Positions 20,407-64,000 of a stretch of 64,000 nucleotides of DNA are shown in pieces. The stretch spans positions 186,001 through 250,000 of the forward strand of contig CBFDEM010000001.1 of assembly GCA_965603825.1 (NCBI GenBank), written 5' to 3'. Numbering within the stretch: the first letter of the stretch is position 1; the number at the start of each line of letters is the position of its first letter. Source of the stretch: Blepharisma stoltei ATCC 30299 (taxonomy: Eukaryota > Protista > Ciliophora). The notes beneath the pieces are model-generated. The model was not told the origin of the DNA. It ran no database searches and worked only from the letters and a program-made list of their open reading frames with translations. The translations under genes were made by a program, and so were the position numbers.

Positions 20407-23400
20407 ATGATCAGAATTGAGGCTATCTGAATGCTTCAGTTTTTAATTATTGCAAGTTTAACTTTGGGTTTAGATATTACTTGCAATCTAAACGTATGCC
20501 CAAAAAGAAACGTAAGATCTATATAGAGAGGAGATGATTACTGTGACCCACTTTGTATGTTTCCTTATTGTGAATATGACTCAGCAGTCTCATCTTCCCC
20601 ACAAACTCAAATACTTGATTCAGATTGCCTATGAGATTGCTTATATTATATAGGCTGTGATTATTCACTATTAGGCAACGGAGTTTGCGATCAAAGCTGC
20701 AATTCTCCTTATTGTGGGTTCGATTTAGGAGACTGTGGATATTGCTGAAATGGATGTAAACTATATTTAGGCTATGAATATATGCTAGGAGGAACCTGCG
20801 ATGATGCTTGCAACGTCATAGCTTGCTACAACGATATGGGAGCTTGCAAGGATTGCGCCACTAACTGCACAGCTGATATGCTGGGAAATGGGATTTGTGA
20901 TTCTGAATGTAATGGGCCTTTCTGTAACTATGATTTCGGTGACTGTGAGAATTCCTCATGTGCTCCAGGCTGCTATACCTATATGATTGGAGATTCTACT
21001 TGTCAAGAAGAATGCCACATGGAGGAATGCAATTATGATGAGTATGATTGCGATTGCTATCCTGGATGTACTTCTTCGATAAGAGGTGACGGAAAATGCG
21101 ATTCTTTGTGCAATAATACTGCTTGCTCTTTTGATAATCATGATTGTGGGGACTGCTCTTCAGGATGCTATGATACGATGCTGGGAAATCTTGAATGTGA
21201 TGATGCTTGCAATAATAAAGATTGTAATTGGGACTATGGAGACTGTGGATGTGCTGACGGATGTGCTTTATCAGATTTTGGGAACTGCAAAGCTGAATGC
21301 CTTGTTGGAAAATGTGCCTATGATCAGATAAGTTCAGACTCTTCAAGAAGATGCAATAATAAAGGATTAGTTTTACTTGACTTATATCAAAATTTAGTTA
21401 AAGGCTCTTTTGATAGCGCTCCTAATTATTTTTGGTGCATCTATAACTCACGCACTTACAATTCCGATACAGATGAGTGGTCAACTTGTGATGTCACCAA
21501 AGCTTATGATTTCACAAACTGCAATCAAATCTGTGACATTGCTGATTGTGCATATAATTGAATAAACTGTGAGCCTGAAAAATCATATAAATGCAAAGAT
21601 GATGACTGTATAAGCTGCTATGGGACTGATGAAGGAAAATGTTTTAAATGCAGCGATTCGACAGTTCAGCTTTTTGGCTATTGTGCAGAAATCTGCCCTT
21701 ATGGGTATGAAGCTAAATCAATTATGGGCAGCAATCCAATTTGTTTGCCATTAGTCGACATTTCGACACCGAGAAACCCTTATGTTTATTATGCAAGCTC
21801 CAAAAAACATGGTGATGTGACAGGAGGGGAAGGGACTTTGGAGTCTCCTTTTGAAACTTTTGCAGTTGCTTTAGCATTGATTCAAAGGAAATATTCGATA
21901 CTTTATCTGATAAATGATGGGGATTATGAGTGGGCTCCTGTTGACGAATTTTACTTTGTAAATAATTTTATAAAAAATAGCCGATCTCCACTTGCCCATC
22001 ATAACTCAGGAGATACGGGGACAATGGTATATATAAAAATAGCAAGTTTAGATGGGAGCATTATAAAAATAAAGACAATCCCTGACAAATCAAACATATA
22101 TATTGGACTTTGGTCTGGGCTTACCTTAGAAATTGAAAATGTTATTTTTGATGGAACTCTAATTACCACATCATGCTCTAGCCTAATATACTGTAGTTAT
22201 TGTCCATATATCGAAAAACAAATAGATGGCTCATATAAAACTGATCGTGGACAAAAAATAAAGACATCAGAATACTTGTCGTCAACATTTTGCTCGACTT
22301 ATAATCAAAATTATTTATTTGGAGTATCAAATCAAGCTATTTTAAATTTAACAAACGTAACCTTTTCTAATTGGGGAACTCTATATTATGCCTTAATAGA
22401 AAGCTGAGGGGGAAATATTACACTTAATAATGTAAATTTTGATAATATCGTCATTTTTAGTGATGAAGCTGCTGCAGTCATTTCAATGCAAGATTGTGAT
22501 AACGCTTTTTATAATTGTGGCACTTTGAATTATACAAATGGGAAAGTATCTAGAATTAACAATGGCTTTGAATATGCCGATCCGATTGATTTTAGAGGGT
22601 TTTTATATGCTGAAAAAATTCAATATGCAACTTTTACAAATGTAATTTTTGAAAAAAATTTGGTGGCTCTTCAGCAGTCATCCACATTCGAAACAGGCTC
22701 TCTTATTACCCTTAAAATATTTCGAAATTTAGAAATTAATAATTGCCAATTTATTTCAAATATTGCTGATACAGGAATTATTAGCATAGCATCAAAGGGG
22801 CTAAATTTTGTAATAGCTGTAAACGAAAATAATGAGCTTATTGATTTATTGCAAGATCACATTTATATACACAATTCAACGTTTACAGGAAATTTCGGGA
22901 AATTTTATGGGATTTTGTATGCAAGCTTCAAAGGACAACTCCAAAACTTTCGATTTGAAAATCTAAGCATAACTTCTAATGGAGTTGAAAGTGGTTCATT
23001 GATATATGTTATAAATAATGAAATTAAAGCCGAATATGAATTAGACACGACAAAACCAGCAACTTTAACAACAGGGCAAAGAGTAACTGCATTTTATAAA
23101 GCGCGCTGGTTTATTACAAAGTGCATTAATTTTTTTGAAAATTATTCAGGTGGTTCTGGGATGATTGACATTAATAATTTAGTGAATATAGATGTTAATA
23201 GTTTGTCGCTAGATTCCAATGGCGCTAGTACAGATATTGACGTAAATGATATAATACTTAATGATTGAATAGAGGATTCAACTATGTATCTCAAACTGCA
23301 ATACGACGATGCTGCTCTTATTGACTGCGCTTCTATGATATCTGTAGACTCTTCAATTAATATTTCTATTTCAGATTTTAGCATGACAAATAATTATTGC

Positions 23401-58962: not shown

Positions 58963-59700
58963 ATGGAGTCTAAATTTAAAAGAAATCCGTTGAAGATTCA
59001 ACTGTCATCAAGCAATGAAAGTTTAAAGTTTTTTGAAGAGTCAGGGTTGTTAAGTTGCTACGAATTCGATGACATTGTAAATCTAAACGAGAGTCCTCAC
59101 AGCAAGTTAATTAAAGAGCTTCAAGCTCAGCTTGATATTGTTAATGAAGATAGAGAAAGGCTAAAACAAGAAAATGAAAAATTAAAAACTGATAATTTTT
59201 CAAATGTCCAAAAGGCCGTTAGCAAAATGCATGACGTTCAATTTGAGCTTGTCAAGAAAATTGCTGCAGACACACGAGAAGTGAATATGACGTTAAATGA
59301 AGAAATTAAAAGGCTTAAAGAAGATTCTGAAAGCAAAGATAAACTGCTTAGCTTGATGAGGGCACTATTAGGGGAAACTAATCTGCAGAATCCATTTGTG
59401 CTATCCTCGAAGGAAAATAGACTTTCAAGTATCCCAAAAAGGAAAACTTACAGTATGTTTGGATTAACTGAGACAGATAAAAAGCGCAATGAAAGCGAAA
59501 AACCAAAGCAAGAGAAAAAACAAGATATGGATATTCATTGTATGCAAGAAAATTCTCCAATTAAAATATGTTTAGGACCAAACACGTCCAGAATTAAAGT
59601 ATCAAGAAATGTGCTAAAATATCCAAGATCAAGAATTCCAATTAGAACTGTCACTCCACCAAATTATTCTAGCAGATCTGTATCTCCTGTACCAAATTAG
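58963..59700 (+). CDS. Hypothetical coiled-coil protein (245 aa)
   Basis: Intact ATG..TAG ORF with a heptad-rich centre. Confidence 0.7.
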   Translation: MESKFKRNPLKIQLSSSNESLKFFEESGLLSCYEFDDIVNLNESPHSKLIKELQAQLDIVNEDRERLKQENEKLKTDNFSNVQKAVSKMHDVQFELVKKIAADTREVNMTLNEEIKRLKEDSESKDKLLSLMRALLGETNLQNPFVLSSKENRLSSIPKRKTYSMFGLTETDKKRNESEKPKQEKKQDMDIHCMQENSPIKICLGPNTSRIKVSRNVLKYPRSRIPIRTVTPPNYSSRSVSPVPN

Positions 59701-59791
59701 CAGTAATTAATTAATGCAATATTTATTAACTATTAATTGTGAATATTAGAAATTTAATAGTTTTGTTGATCAACAATGAATAATAAAATAG

Positions 59792-59863
59792 TCCAAGGTC
59801 GGGAGTTGAACCCGATGTATAACACGATGAGAGCGGCATGCTTCGGCCCCGGGCCACCCTGGA
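59792..59863 (-). ncRNA. tRNA-like RNA 1 (tRNA-Glu(CTC)-like, with non-canonical D and anticodon arms)
   Basis: Acceptor TCCAGGG/CCTTGGA, T arm TCGGG-TTCAACT-CCCGA, CTCTCAT at the anticodon-loop position, followed by CTATTTT. Confidence 0.72.
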
Positions 59864-60554
59864 TTGAAACAAAATAACTGCAAAATTATAAATATTTTTC
59901 AAATGTGGTTTTGACATAGGATTCTTTAATCCAAGCTAATCTAGCATACTATAGTTTATTGTTTAATCATAAATTCTGAAAATTAATTGAGCTAGCCTAA
60001 TGCAGAATTAAGGGTAAAGTAAATGCGTATTTTTCATAATTTTCAATTTACTAAAACTTAAGTTAAGTTTTGAAAGTGAATCAATCTATGTATTCTTCAT
60101 AAAAGATATTCTCAAATAATTTGTCATATATTTATAGAGGCGTCATCATCTAAGCTAATTCATAGTTAGCCAAGTATCGATAAGCAAAAGGTAATTAAGT
60201 TAATAATATATCTTTATTGCTCTTCAAACCTTAAAAGCCTACCTCAAACTTTTTAGATAATGTATTTTTAGCCATAATTGATTTATTTATTTGGAATTTT
60301 TGAAGATCAGATAACATCGGTATTATGTCTCAAGATATATATTTTTAATTTTTTGACAGAGGAATCTGAAAATCATACAGTATTTCAGATTTTAGCTCAA
60401 TCTAGTATATGCAAATCTATACATTTAATATAAAATAAATCTTTTTTCCTTATAACAAGCATTTGGATTTGGATATTAATAATTTTCGATTCAAAAGCAT
60501 TGGTTTTCCTGAAATGAAAGAACTATATATATCTCCGAATATAGTCAATATTAA

Positions 60555-60623
60555 TCCAAGGCTGGCGGGGCCAAACGAGGTTTCTCACTCCCTTCTTTCT
60601 CAGGTTCAACTCCTGACCTTGGA
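60555..60623 (+). ncRNA. tRNA-like RNA 2
   Basis: Acceptor TCCAAGG/CCTTGGA, T arm TCAGG-TTCAACT-CCTGA, followed by CTTTTTT. Confidence 0.72.
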
Positions 60624-60760
60624 CTTTTTTAAATAATAAATAATTATGCAGACTTATATAAATTGCTTAAAACTAATGATTGAAGGACTTTTAGAATTAT
60701 TTTGAAGCTCAAAGCATTAATAAACGATCTATATAATATCCCGCAAGCAGTTATTTTCAA

Positions 60761-60828
60761 TCCAGGGCTGGCGGGGCCAAAATATGTTTCTCACTCCTTA
60801 TTTCTCAGGTTCAACTCCTGACCCTGGA
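60761..60828 (+). ncRNA. tRNA-like RNA 3
   Basis: Acceptor TCCAGGG/CCCTGGA, T arm TCAGG-TTCAACT-CCTGA, followed by CCCTTTTT. Confidence 0.72.
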
Positions 60829-60873
60829 CCCTTTTTACAAATATCTATTAAATCTTTATTAACATTTATATAT

Positions 60874-63800
60874 TTAACTCATTCCGTTTCTCTGTTCGTC
60901 CAGGCTTTCGTTGCAATTCATACGCTCATTCACATTTTCTTCCACACGGGAATCGTCCAAGGGAGTTTGATTATGAGCTCTCAAACTAACTACAGAATTA
61001 TCCATCTCATTAGACTCATCTTTTTGGAATTTCAAAGCATCATAAATCTTATTTTTTGGTTTTCCAGCAGCTGGCACGAGCAAGCTTGGGAAATATTTTT
61101 TCTGAATAATTATAGTAACAATTGCTATAATGCCCCACCCGATAAATAAAGCAATAAACCATGCGATATTGTCTTGCTGCCCTGCATTGGAAAGGGTAGC
61201 TAAAAATGAAATATAGAAAACTCCTACAAGCGAAGCGAACTCCCATAAATTGCATCTTCCATAGTTGAAAGGCTTGATTTTATAAGTGATCACTGAGAAA
61301 CAGAAAATCAAAAATGAAAATAAAACTCCATGGGCTATTGGCTGTGATCCTTGAAGAGACTTTCCTACAGCAATAAGCAGAATTTGGACACATGTTTTAA
61401 AAAGAAGGAAAAATGGCTTGACCATTAAATTTACACCAGTTTTTGCTTGCTGCCAAAGAGGCCGAGAAAAAACTGCAATAGGCTGATAGCATGACAATGC
61501 AAGAGCTGACATGATGATATATGGATAATGGTCATCAGTTCAGCAATTCATATAGCAGTCTCTTCATACAAATGATTTGTCTTGTGCTTTGTGGTCACAT
61601 ACAAAGACATCAAGCAGCATTGTCATAAATGGCAAAAACATTGTGTTTCCGAAAAATGGTAAATACATCGTGTTTACTAAGCCCATAAATCTTTGACATA
61701 AAGGTACATGAATTAACCATTTTTCTGCATTTGCCATAATAAGTAATATTAAAAAGAACCAAGTGTAGCATAAAACTGACACAACAATAAGGAAGGTCCA
61801 ATAGGTCGATTTACTCCCTGACGTCATCTTCAGAAAATCGACCATAAAAATATTCGCGGCAACAGAAACAGCTGACTTCAGAGCAGGAAAAGTAGGGGAA
61901 ATTGCAATAAACTGGAAAAACTCAATTCCAATAGTAATAATTACCAAATTGTCTTTTCATGACCTTACAACAGGTTCAGTGATTTCTTGGTATTCCAGCT
62001 GTTTCCATTTTCTATAAGCGAAATAGCTAAGCACAAGGGTAAGTAAAAACAGCACAAAGCCAATAACAATTACAATGACGATGCCATCCCAATCAACAGA
62101 GACCATATTTTTCGCGAAGGGACAATCATATGAAGATGACCACTCATCAGATGGAGGAGATTTTCTATCTCCTCCAAATATCAAAGAAGTCCCTGTGACG
62201 CTAGAAAATACACTTGGGTTGCTTGGGTCATATATTTGTACAGTAATAATAGCATTTTTTTGCATATTTACAATAGAAAACCCAAACCCAGACCTATCAT
62301 TTGACCCATCTATAAACTTCACAACTCCACTTGCCCCAGTAAAATCAGCTGATCTGAGAGATTTGGTAAGGTCAGTACCTGAATTGAAGTCTTCACTGTT
62401 TGAAATCATCTCCGCTACTGTATATGCAATTAAATAGACAGTATCATAAGCATACATCCCATAAACTGAATAGTCACTTTTATACTTGGCAGCATAATTT
62501 GTTTCGAATTTACTGCCTGCATCACCAATAGCGCTTCTATATGTGATTCCAAAAGCCCCATTAAGCACTTCATAAATTTTTTTCGAGCTTGAGCTTTTCT
62601 CAATCAAAGCTTCCAGTTCATCAGTCAGCCATCTTGAGCCAACCCAAGAATAATCAGACCCATAAAGCTCCTTTTTATGTGCAGTAAGTGCAACTTGGTA
62701 GCCTACAGTGTGGTGGCCAATATAAATAATCACTTTAACTTGATGTCTGACTATGTTAGAAAGGGCTTCATCGACACTGTTTTTCGTTTTCGAAGTAAGG
62801 CCTAAATTTGGGTCATAAGTAATTCCTCGCTTACTCACATCATTTTTTACAGTAATTCCAAGAGTCTTTATGTTGCTCATAAAGGAGGAATATACATCAA
62901 TTCCGTATTCATCTAATGTATATATCACGCCAATTTTTTTCCAACCGATTTCTTGGATAAATAAAGCGAGTGCTACACCTTCTAAATCATCAGCTTCAAT
63001 GGTTCTTATGAGCTGAGGATAATTATCAGTGCTCGTTAAATTAGTTCATGTAGCCCCATAACTGATCAATGGTTTAGGATCTGAGGTGGCTGAAATCGCT
63101 TTTGAATATGCAACTGTTTCACTTGTGGTATACGGGCCTATATATGCTAAAATATTTAAGCTTGCAAGAGACTTTATATTTGATGCAGCTAAATCTGTAT
63201 TCATATAAGTGTCTTTATACTCAACAATAATTTGATAGTCACCCATAATTGTTAATGAGTTTACTTCAGAAACGCCAAGATCAAAGCCATTTTTTATAGC
63301 TGTAGCTCCAGCATATGTATTCCCATCCTGATCATGTGCAGGATATAATAAACAAATAGTAAGTAGCGGGATTTTGTCATTAGGAACTGTTGTAGTAAAG
63401 CCAGGCCAAATTATTGTGTTTTTAATAGTGACACTTCTTCCTGCTAAGTTCCAATAGCCTACATAATATTCTTGAAAATTTTGAATATTATAGATACTAT
63501 AGCTTGGGACTTTCATTCGGTTGGTATCAAATTTTATAGGATAATCCAAAGTAGGAGTTGAAGGGTTTGTTAAAATATAGTTCACAATTGCTTTCCCGGA
63601 AATCTTAGTTTGGGATAAATCTATTTGGGCTAGATATTGGCATATTAAAGTCAACGCTGAATAAATATTTCCCAAAAGGTGGCCTGATAAATATGCATCT
63701 TCAGGCGAAGAAAACCCAATTGCCCCTGATTTTAGTATCCCAAAAGTGCTTGAATCTAAGTCAGCATAGGAATTCATTGACACTTCTCCAAGATCAACCA

Positions 63801-64000
63801 TAGCATCGTCACAAAAAATTCATGCAAATCCTGATCCTCCCATAACACTTATATCAGCCGCATGCAGTAGCTGAGCCGCATGCATTGAATCCGTGCACAC
63901 TAAAATGACCCTTGCACCTGAGTTTTGTGTTGTCCCTTGCAATCTTGATGTAATAGTAACTCCAGAGTTTTTGTCATCTAAGTCTATAATAATTTCATCA
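60874..64000 (-). CDS. Distant paralog of the tandem Venus-flytrap + ~9-TM receptors (5' end outside the window)
   Basis: Four large same-frame ORFs joined through TGA. Motifs PLISYGAT, YPQLIRTI, YAYDTVYLIAY, FTGASGVVKF, CPF, IEFFQF, DCYMNCW and KPFNYGRCNLW. Confidence 0.88.

Follow-up and report, generated by a model that had tools for sequence, protein, structure and literature searches.

The macronuclear (MAC) genome of Blepharisma stoltei ATCC 30299 (41.46 Mb in 64 contigs, about 30% G+C) contains five genes for small RNAs that combine the top half of a transfer RNA (tRNA) with an unusual central arm bearing a 10-nt loop. Three of them, designated A, B and C, occupy a 1.1-kb spacer between convergent protein genes within positions 186001-250000 of Contig_1 (G000:C1), the 64,000-nucleotide stretch that was analysed and is referred to below as the window; two paralogs, D and E, lie on other contigs. 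The family appears to encode a functional, non-standard tRNA-shaped RNA other than an ordinary elongator tRNA, and this reading is assigned a probability of roughly 0.6. The five genes are the following (A-C in window coordinates).

59791-59863, minus strand: tRNA-like gene A, 73 nt including the discriminator C at 59791 (sequence; covariance model, 78.4 bits; pattern match)
60555-60624, plus strand: tRNA-like gene B, 70 nt (covariance model, 81.3 bits; ARAGORN, tRNA-Glu(ctc))
60761-60829, plus strand: tRNA-like gene C, 69 nt (covariance model, 84 bits)
G000:C33:543665-543736 (Contig_39), minus strand: paralog D, 72 nt (covariance model and pattern search)
G000:C52:366640-366710 (Contig_56), minus strand: paralog E, 71 nt (covariance model and pattern search)

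Searches of the whole genome with a family covariance model and with patterns returned exactly five loci at 77-84 bits, the next match scoring 31 bits; the features shared by A-C are therefore far beyond chance. For comparison between copies, the top half was defined as 32 positions (acceptor strands, T arm and discriminator) and the central arm as 26 nt, aligned without gaps on the closing pair. The family covariance model grouped A-C with the Contig_39 copy D at 78-84 bits, their top halves being identical at 28-31 of 32 positions. C is a tandem duplicate of B, located 206 bp downstream and sharing 30 of 32 top-half and 19 of 26 (73%) central positions with it. This duplication has diverged, and its unit takes in about 60 nt of the upstream flank, the flanks of the two genes being alike.

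The trio is not novel as a discovery, since it is already on record in the supplement of a 2023 preprint (bioRxiv 10.1101/2023.10.09.561518), in which three tRNA-like genes of Contig_1 are mapped to the interval from BSTOLATCC_MAC117 to MAC118. The sequence-only reading from which this work started had taken the three for an undescribed family, a claim that falls with the listing of the exact loci in that supplement. The same preprint reports six MAC loci with high coverage in Y-shaped adapter-ligated mature tRNA sequencing (YAMAT-seq) but without a tRNAscan-SE prediction. Coverage of the 72-bp gene Contig_39-tRNA-like(UCA) is given as 7800x and that of the Contig_1 trio as about 7700x, against a median of 5500x for tRNAs. 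According to the supplement, the RNAs of the trio and of the Contig_39 gene all end in an untemplated CCA and show a signal of base modification at comparable positions, so that both expression as RNA and CCA addition, which the sequence-only reading had proposed to look for, are positive in published data. Homologs are reported from other Blepharisma species and none from Stentor coeruleus, and the cross-species conservation of the Contig_39 gene is given as 93.8%, compared with about 61% in its flanks (bioRxiv 10.1101/2023.10.09.561518).

Copy B is the first entry of the preprint's ARAGORN file for MAC contigs, a 70-base tRNA-Glu(ctc) at 246555-246624 of Contig_1, and the preprint's tRNAscan-SE table has no entry at the location of A-C. 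The contig labels used here follow lexicographic order, the tRNAscan-SE entries of Contig_22, Contig_2, Contig_59 and Contig_60 corresponding to C15, C12, C55 and C57; by this order C33 is Contig_39 and C52 is Contig_56, and copy D (C33, 72 nt) fits the preprint's Contig_39 gene. Copy E, the Contig_56 paralog, is new here. The preprint text available to us does not describe this paralog, the 10-nt loop, the covarying central helix or the link to a larger set of genes with U1 and C73 that is set out below. A literature search found no other paper on a Blepharisma tRNA-like family. The five-gene family is restricted to Blepharisma; in one metagenome scan, a 22-base degenerate T-arm/acceptor pattern picked up only two G+C-rich chance matches without tRNA-like context, and no homologs outside this genome were found.

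The islands described by the sequence-only reading, with their stems, T loop, discriminator C, oligo-T run, D hairpin and 10-nt loop, are all present in the sequence. The acceptor stem of A-C has 7 bp (TCCARGG/CCYTGGA) and varies among them at pair 5-68, where A has G.U, B has A-U and C has G-C. All three share the T loop TTCAACT and the discriminator C; the T stem enclosing this loop reads TCGGG/CCCGA in A, whereas B and C have TCAGG/CCTGA. D and E have the same acceptor stem, a discriminator C and a mini D hairpin, while their T arms vary in a compensatory manner: D has the stem TCGGG/CCCGA and the loop TTCGACT, and E has the stem TTGGG/CCCAA and the loop TTCGAAT. All five copies consequently possess the top half of a tRNA, consisting of a 7-bp acceptor stem, a discriminator, a 5-bp T stem and a 7-nt T-loop.

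The remainder of the molecule departs from the standard form. The D arm of A-C is a GGC(C)/(G)GCC hairpin of 3-4 bp with a 3-nt loop containing GG. A standard D arm has a stem of 3-4 bp and a loop of 7-11 nt with G18 and G19; in the family the loop has only 3-4 nt and the whole arm is 7 nt shorter, with the GG kept in the loop. Regarding the anticodon arm, the usual 5-bp stem closing a 7-nt loop, with its U33 and purine 37, is lacking, the conserved fold being a helix of 6-8 bp with a 10-nt loop. Hairpin analysis of the central segment gave, as the best ungapped solution in each of A-C, a stem of 6-7 pairs with a 10-nt loop closed by G-C, at the following positions.

59819-59844, minus strand: central helix and 10-nt loop of A (loop CCGCTCTCAT, closing pair G-C)
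60573-60598, plus strand: central helix and 10-nt loop of B (loop TTTCTCACTC, closing pair G-C)
60779-60804, plus strand: central helix and 10-nt loop of C (loop identical to that of B, TTTCTCACTC)

Several positions of the central stem differ between C and B, and the changes compensate each other. Alignment of the 10-nt loops on the closing pair (CCGCTCTCAT in A, TTTCTCACTC in B and C, ACTATCAAAG in D and AACATCTCAG in E) leaves only U5 and C6 invariant across the five copies. UCA and the longer motif U-N-U-C-A are present in all five loops, and the latter could be read as U33, an NUC anticodon of the Glu/Asp box and A37. This motif occupies loop positions 5-9 in A and E and positions 3-7 in B, C and D. 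The TCTCA noted in the loops by the sequence-only reading is thus present in A-C, but at positions that differ between A and the B/C pair. A canonical fold with a 7-nt loop was considered as the family structure and rejected, being allowed only by A (2 bp) and D (1-2 extra bp inside the loop).

The distribution of changes among the paralogs was used to evaluate selection. The top halves of the copies are identical at 25-31 of 32 positions (78-97%), compared with 10-13 of 26 (38-50%) in the central arm, apart from the tandem pair B/C mentioned above. This contrast is significant by Fisher's test in the nine non-tandem pairs (p from 3e-6 to 6e-3) and in B/C (p = 0.036). The acceptor and T stems are paired in 60 of 60 cells, with double changes at the T-stem pairs 50-64 and 51-63. 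For the proposed 8-bp central helix, 85% of 40 cells are paired, compared with 61.5 +/- 6.2% in shuffled sequences, none of 500 shuffles reaching the observed value; sliding the helix partners as a control left 45-60% of cells paired. Both sides have changed in six of the eight central pairs, and the covariation score is 0.70 versus 0.24. The 10-nt-loop architecture was set on A-C beforehand and was then encountered in the later-found D and E; among shuffled sequences, only 0.1-0.2% combine 6 or more pairs with a G-C-closed loop of 10 nt. These patterns support the view that the structure of the family, comprising both the top half and the central helix, is under selection, as the sequence-only reading had proposed.

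A second allele seen over window positions 59864-60122 is about 96% identical and occurs in three of four poly(A)-type RNA runs; it probably represents a second strain from the same study. Its copy A has no substitutions and one 1-nt deletion in the variable region, compared with 10 listed substitutions in about 233 nt of upstream spacer, and this sparing weakly supports selection (p about 0.02-0.04).

Each copy of the family contains a B box (GGTTCRAMTCC) and a partial A box (TGGC...GG). All copies but D are preceded, at a distance of about 25-33 nt, by a TATA-like block, which reads CTATATA except in A; the corresponding element of D is weaker than in the other four copies. A run of 4-6 T follows A-C at a distance of 0-3 nt, and a T5 run lies 1 nt downstream of D and E. 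The signals of the trio, read from the sequence, are as follows.

59802-59812, minus strand: B-box/T-arm core GGTTCAACTCC of A
60603-60613, plus strand: B-box/T-arm core of B
60808-60818, plus strand: B-box/T-arm core of C
59785-59788, minus strand: T4 run downstream of A, resembling an RNA polymerase III (Pol III) terminator
60625-60630, plus strand: T6 run immediately after B
60832-60836, plus strand: T5 run 2 nt past C
59886-59895, minus strand: TATA-like element about 25-34 nt upstream of A
60523-60533, plus strand: TATA-like element CTATATATATC about 30 nt upstream of B
60729-60740, plus strand: TATA-like element CTATATAATATC about 30 nt upstream of C

The standard tRNA genes of this genome (Glu, Gln, Lys and Asp) show a matching TATA-like block near -30 and an immediate T-run; their blocks, about 22-33 nt upstream, include GTATATATGG, GTATAAATAG and GTATTTATAG. 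This suggests that Pol III tRNA promoters in this genome may use an upstream TATA element. A-C, and the family as a whole, are accordingly likely to be Pol III-transcribed genes of tRNA type, in agreement with the sequence-only reading; the B box, the partial A box, the TATA-like element near -30 and the T-run terminator all point to this assignment.

A scheme may be proposed on the basis of these features. A, B and C would each be an independent Pol III gene, driven by the internal B box and partial A box with the TATA-like element near -30, and ended by the oligo-T terminator. The transcript of about 70 nt would retain the tRNA top half, with the 7-bp acceptor stem stacked on a standard T arm and followed by the discriminator C. 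RNase P, RNase Z and the CCA-adding enzyme would presumably recognise this half and handle the transcript as a tRNA, giving rise to an abundant CCA-tailed RNA. The anticodon arm would have been replaced by a helix of 6-8 bp whose sequence drifts while its pairing, the closing G-C and the size of the 10-nt loop are held. The properties under selection would then be tRNA-like processing and handling through the acceptor/T minihelix, together with a rigid helix that displays a large loop. Such a loop might act as a target of binding, modification or cleavage, or the RNA could serve as an amino-acid carrier defined by its acceptor.

Comparison with known RNAs yielded few matches. Rfam RF00005 gave none, either at the gathering score in the window or at E<=10 in 59600-61000, and only chance-level matches to unrelated families were returned at the gathering score and at E<=10. 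ARAGORN calls only B among A-C, and A has neither an ARAGORN nor an Rfam call. The sequence-only reading had expected a pseudogene call or no tRNA match at all, which holds for Rfam and tRNAscan-SE but not for ARAGORN, where B is a tRNA-Glu(ctc).

The genome carries the standard tRNA genes Glu(CUC) in two copies, Glu(UUC) in eight, Asp(GUC) in six, tRNA-Trp(CCA) and a typical tRNA-Sec, so that no ordinary decoding task is left vacant for the family RNAs. The closest standard top halves are those of Asp(GUC), identical at 21.4 of 32 positions, and of the one Glu(UUC) gene with C73, a variant located on Contig_22, for which the figure is 20.2 of 32. tRNA-Glu(CUC/UUC) and tRNA-Asp(GUC) share with the family the pairs U1-A72, C2-G71 and C3-G70, the T-loop consensus and the flanking layout of promoter and terminator. 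The loop of tRNA-Glu(CUC) is CTCTCAC, and copy A shares its C-U-C-U-C-A. In contrast, the family lacks the 4-bp D stem with its 8-11 nt loop and the 5-bp anticodon stem with its 7-nt loop of standard tRNA-Glu and tRNA-Asp, and its top-half identity to them is just 18-21 of 32. A Glu/Asp-type origin of the family is plausible from these resemblances. The more specific descent from tRNA-Glu that had been put forward is likewise plausible in view of the loop motif U-C-U-C-A and top halves identical at about 20-21 of 32 positions, but it is not backed by a significant sequence match.

The variant tRNA-Glu(UUC) (G000:C15:410325-410395, minus strand) has the acceptor strand TCTGAGG, an A5.C68 mismatch and, like the family, a discriminator C, whereas the seven main Glu(UUC) genes have A73. 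About 170 bp from it lies a degenerate 'Val-CAC' gene (G000:C15:410082-410154, minus strand) with a similar 5' end. The variant is a possible link between Glu tRNAs and the tRNA-like genes with U1 and C73.

The latter are the nearest sequences outside the family and its best non-family covariance-model matches, comprising at least 11 tRNA-like genes with the acceptor stem TCAGARG/CYTCTGA and discriminator C. A loose U1/C73 pattern gave mostly chance matches, and only those with a T arm were retained. Members of this set, identified from the sequence, are listed below.

G000:C3:113481-113552, G000:C10:276672-276744 and G000:C37:127654-127725, plus strand: U1/C73 tRNA-like genes
G000:C12:82837-82909, 83102-83173 and 83423-83495, minus strand: U1/C73 tRNA-like genes
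G000:C33:56559-56630, G000:C38:104467-104538, and G000:C42:21582-21656 and 21724-21795, minus strand: U1/C73 tRNA-like genes

tRNAscan-SE identifies these genes as Ser-GCT (41), Arg-GCG (41), Arg-TCT (55), Ala/Val (55-59), Phe-AAA (32), Leu-CAG (57) and undetermined, assignments that are low-scoring (25-59 bits) and mutually inconsistent. The set resembles the family in U1-A72, the discriminator C and closely similar T arms, but differs from it in having a normal D arm, G/C-rich anticodon stems of 4-5 bp and another acceptor sequence. The anticodon arms of its members are unrelated to one another and often enlarged. Five of the genes combine a 4-5 bp stem and G-C closure with a 10-nt loop, and among the nine distinct 10-nt loops of the family and this set C6 is present in all nine and U5, A9 and A1 in seven each. 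The loop of a Contig_42 gene equals that of copy D save for one base. By these shared features the family is related to a larger U1-A72/C73 tRNA-like set that has the 10-nt loop in common with it. A truncated tRNA-like gene of 55 nt (G000:C45:362305-362359, plus strand) combines the acceptor stem TCAGAGG/CCTCTGA and C73 with a normal D arm and is followed by a T-run; it is without most of the anticodon and T arms and has no ARAGORN call.

Several points weigh against a functional role of the family. The authors of the preprint suggest that the diverged Contig_1 copies may be pseudogenes (bioRxiv 10.1101/2023.10.09.561518). The evidence of expression comes from this one supplement. Whole-molecule minimum free energy z-scores are only -0.8 to -2.0, the central helices being A-U rich and thermodynamically marginal; RNAfold fails to predict the central helix of C, and single central stems are just weakly better than shuffles (p 0.08-0.26). 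Only five sequences entered the covariation test, including one recently duplicated pair, and three of them had served to define the structure. If the genes were transcribed pseudogenes, they would be decaying relics of Glu/Asp-type tRNAs that are still transcribed and CCA-tailed by virtue of promoter and processing determinants in the top half. The identity of just 59-71% between the Contig_1 copies and the Contig_39 copy given in the preprint is in line with such decay, as are the weak central stems without a canonical 7-nt anticodon loop, the coverage of decoding by standard Glu and Asp tRNAs, and the presence in the genome of other degenerate tRNA-like genes, including the 55-nt one. However, neutral decay cannot hold 25-31 of 32 top-half positions across five paralogs of old standing while the central arm drops to 38-50% identity, nor can it preserve central pairing, the closing G-C and a loop of exactly 10 nt through the turnover of sequence. 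The need for a promoter covers the B box and not a fully paired acceptor stem, and the YAMAT-seq coverage reported in the preprint is as high as that of real tRNAs. The covariation of the central helix in particular argues against the preprint's suggestion for the Contig_1 copies. On balance, the data speak against plain pseudogene decay of the trio, and we regard that explanation as unlikely.

A functional RNA might still be a decoding one. To our knowledge, a 10-nt loop is larger than that of any natural decoder, which counts against this possibility. Specialised adaptors with an expanded loop, once aminoacylated, could read UGA as Trp, GAG or GAN codons, or more than three bases. All five loops contain UCA, and U-N-U-C-A would suit U33, the anticodon and A37 of the Glu/Asp family; the GG kept in the D loop means that the elbow contact may be kept as well. 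According to the preprint, the RNAs are CCA-tailed and of tRNA-like abundance, and B. stoltei has a second, unusual cytosolic paralog of tryptophanyl-tRNA synthetase but lacks a nuclear tRNA-Trp(UCA). An 8-nt anticodon loop is found in some natural decoders, such as yeast mitochondrial tRNA-Thr1 (PMC4267643), and the anticodon loop is also enlarged in +1 frameshift suppressors such as SufB2 (bioRxiv 2020 preprint). These enlarged-loop tRNAs, and mitochondrial tRNAs with a reduced D arm, resemble the family in combining an altered loop or D arm with a normal acceptor/T minihelix, but enlarged-loop tRNAs have loops of 8 (rarely 9) nt and proven decoding activity, whereas decoding by the family, with its 10-nt loop and nuclear genes, would be hypothetical. 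Measured from the helix, the UCA or CUC triplet does not occupy the same place in the loops of A and E as in those of B, C and D, and D departs from the others at position 34. With U1-A72 and C73, the acceptor stem and discriminator are unlike those of tRNA-Trp, and UGA reading is already accounted for by a tRNA-Trp(CCA) with a 4-bp stem. Decoding by the family RNAs is therefore considered rather improbable. Somewhat more doubtful still is the broader proposal that the five genes together with the wider U1-A72/C73 set form a class of aminoacylated expanded-loop adaptors in Blepharisma translation, for instance as the long-sought cognate reader of UGA in ciliates that use it for Trp, for context-dependent reading or for codons of more than three bases; the genes would then be neither pseudogenes nor sources of inert tRNA mimics.

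An origin as mobile or processed elements, either a tRNA-derived short interspersed nuclear element (SINE) or a mascRNA-like unit released from the terminal part of a long Pol II transcript, is very improbable. The only observation pointing that way is the overlap of weak poly(A)-type contigs with copy A and about 330 nt upstream of it (59746-60196), which does not extend to B or C. Dispersal as a SINE, the outcome that the sequence-only reading had named as fatal to it, did not emerge: there are five copies in a 41.5-Mb genome, with no 3' tail and no target-site duplication, and each ends at a T-run after the discriminator. Every copy has its own TATA-like box and T-run, and B and C are without long-transcript coverage, contrary to what a mascRNA-type unit would show. 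No primer-binding site, that is, no site complementary to the 3' end plus CCA, was found anywhere in the MAC genome, which also speaks against a mobile element.

For a functional RNA of tRNA shape, a parallel in kind is offered by the mascRNA and MEN-beta RNAs of vertebrates, which are tRNA-shaped and non-decoding and whose acceptor/T arm is recognised by RNase P, RNase Z and the CCA-adding enzyme. Whereas mascRNA is released by cleavage at the 3' end of a long Pol II transcript and has a shrunken loop, the Blepharisma genes are multi-copy, carry their own Pol III-type signals and specify a large loop. Two other candidates were examined and rejected. tRNA-Sec is about 87-90 nt long, with a long variable arm, 9/4 stems and a 7-nt UCA loop, while the family RNAs have 69-73 nt, 7/5 stems and no long variable arm; a typical 87-nt tRNA-Sec is encoded on Contig_36. 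A tRNA-like RNA of the trypanosomatid signal recognition particle (SRP) type, which there stands in for the Alu domain of 7SL, is not supported, the host SRP RNA being of full length including the 5' Alu-type domain (G000:C18:120774-121015; Protozoa_SRP, 116 bits, model positions 1-228).

Some further observations concern the surroundings of the trio. Poly(A)-type RNA contigs of low depth, present in four runs, span 59746-60196, which comprises copy A and about 330 nt on its upstream side; B, C and the rest of the spacer are uncovered, and these contigs carry no information on 70-nt RNAs. The covered segment may belong to an unannotated transcript from either strand, or to a precursor of A produced by read-through. 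The neighbouring gene on the minus strand (window 60874-63801) encodes an ANF_receptor ligand-binding domain (E 3e-22), after which comes a probable membrane region. Its open reading frames are broken by in-frame TGA under the bacterial code, as expected where UGA encodes Trp.

The biological interest of the family lies in part in this reassignment. Blepharisma reads UGA as Trp, and no nuclear UGA-cognate tRNA has been found. Abundant CCA-tailed, tRNA-shaped RNAs with UCA in an oversized loop are an obvious unexplained player, a point already made in the preprint (bioRxiv 10.1101/2023.10.09.561518). The comparison of paralogs shows that the Contig_1 copies are probably not simply decaying, the acceptor/T minihelix, the geometry of the helix and the 10-nt loop with its fixed U-C having apparently been kept by selection. 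A supplementary curiosity thereby becomes a defined RNA class, with at least 10 genes that have a 10-nt loop (five from the family and five from the U1/C73 set). If these RNAs prove to be non-decoding, they would represent a protist counterpart of tRNA mimics such as mascRNA, produced from their own Pol III genes.

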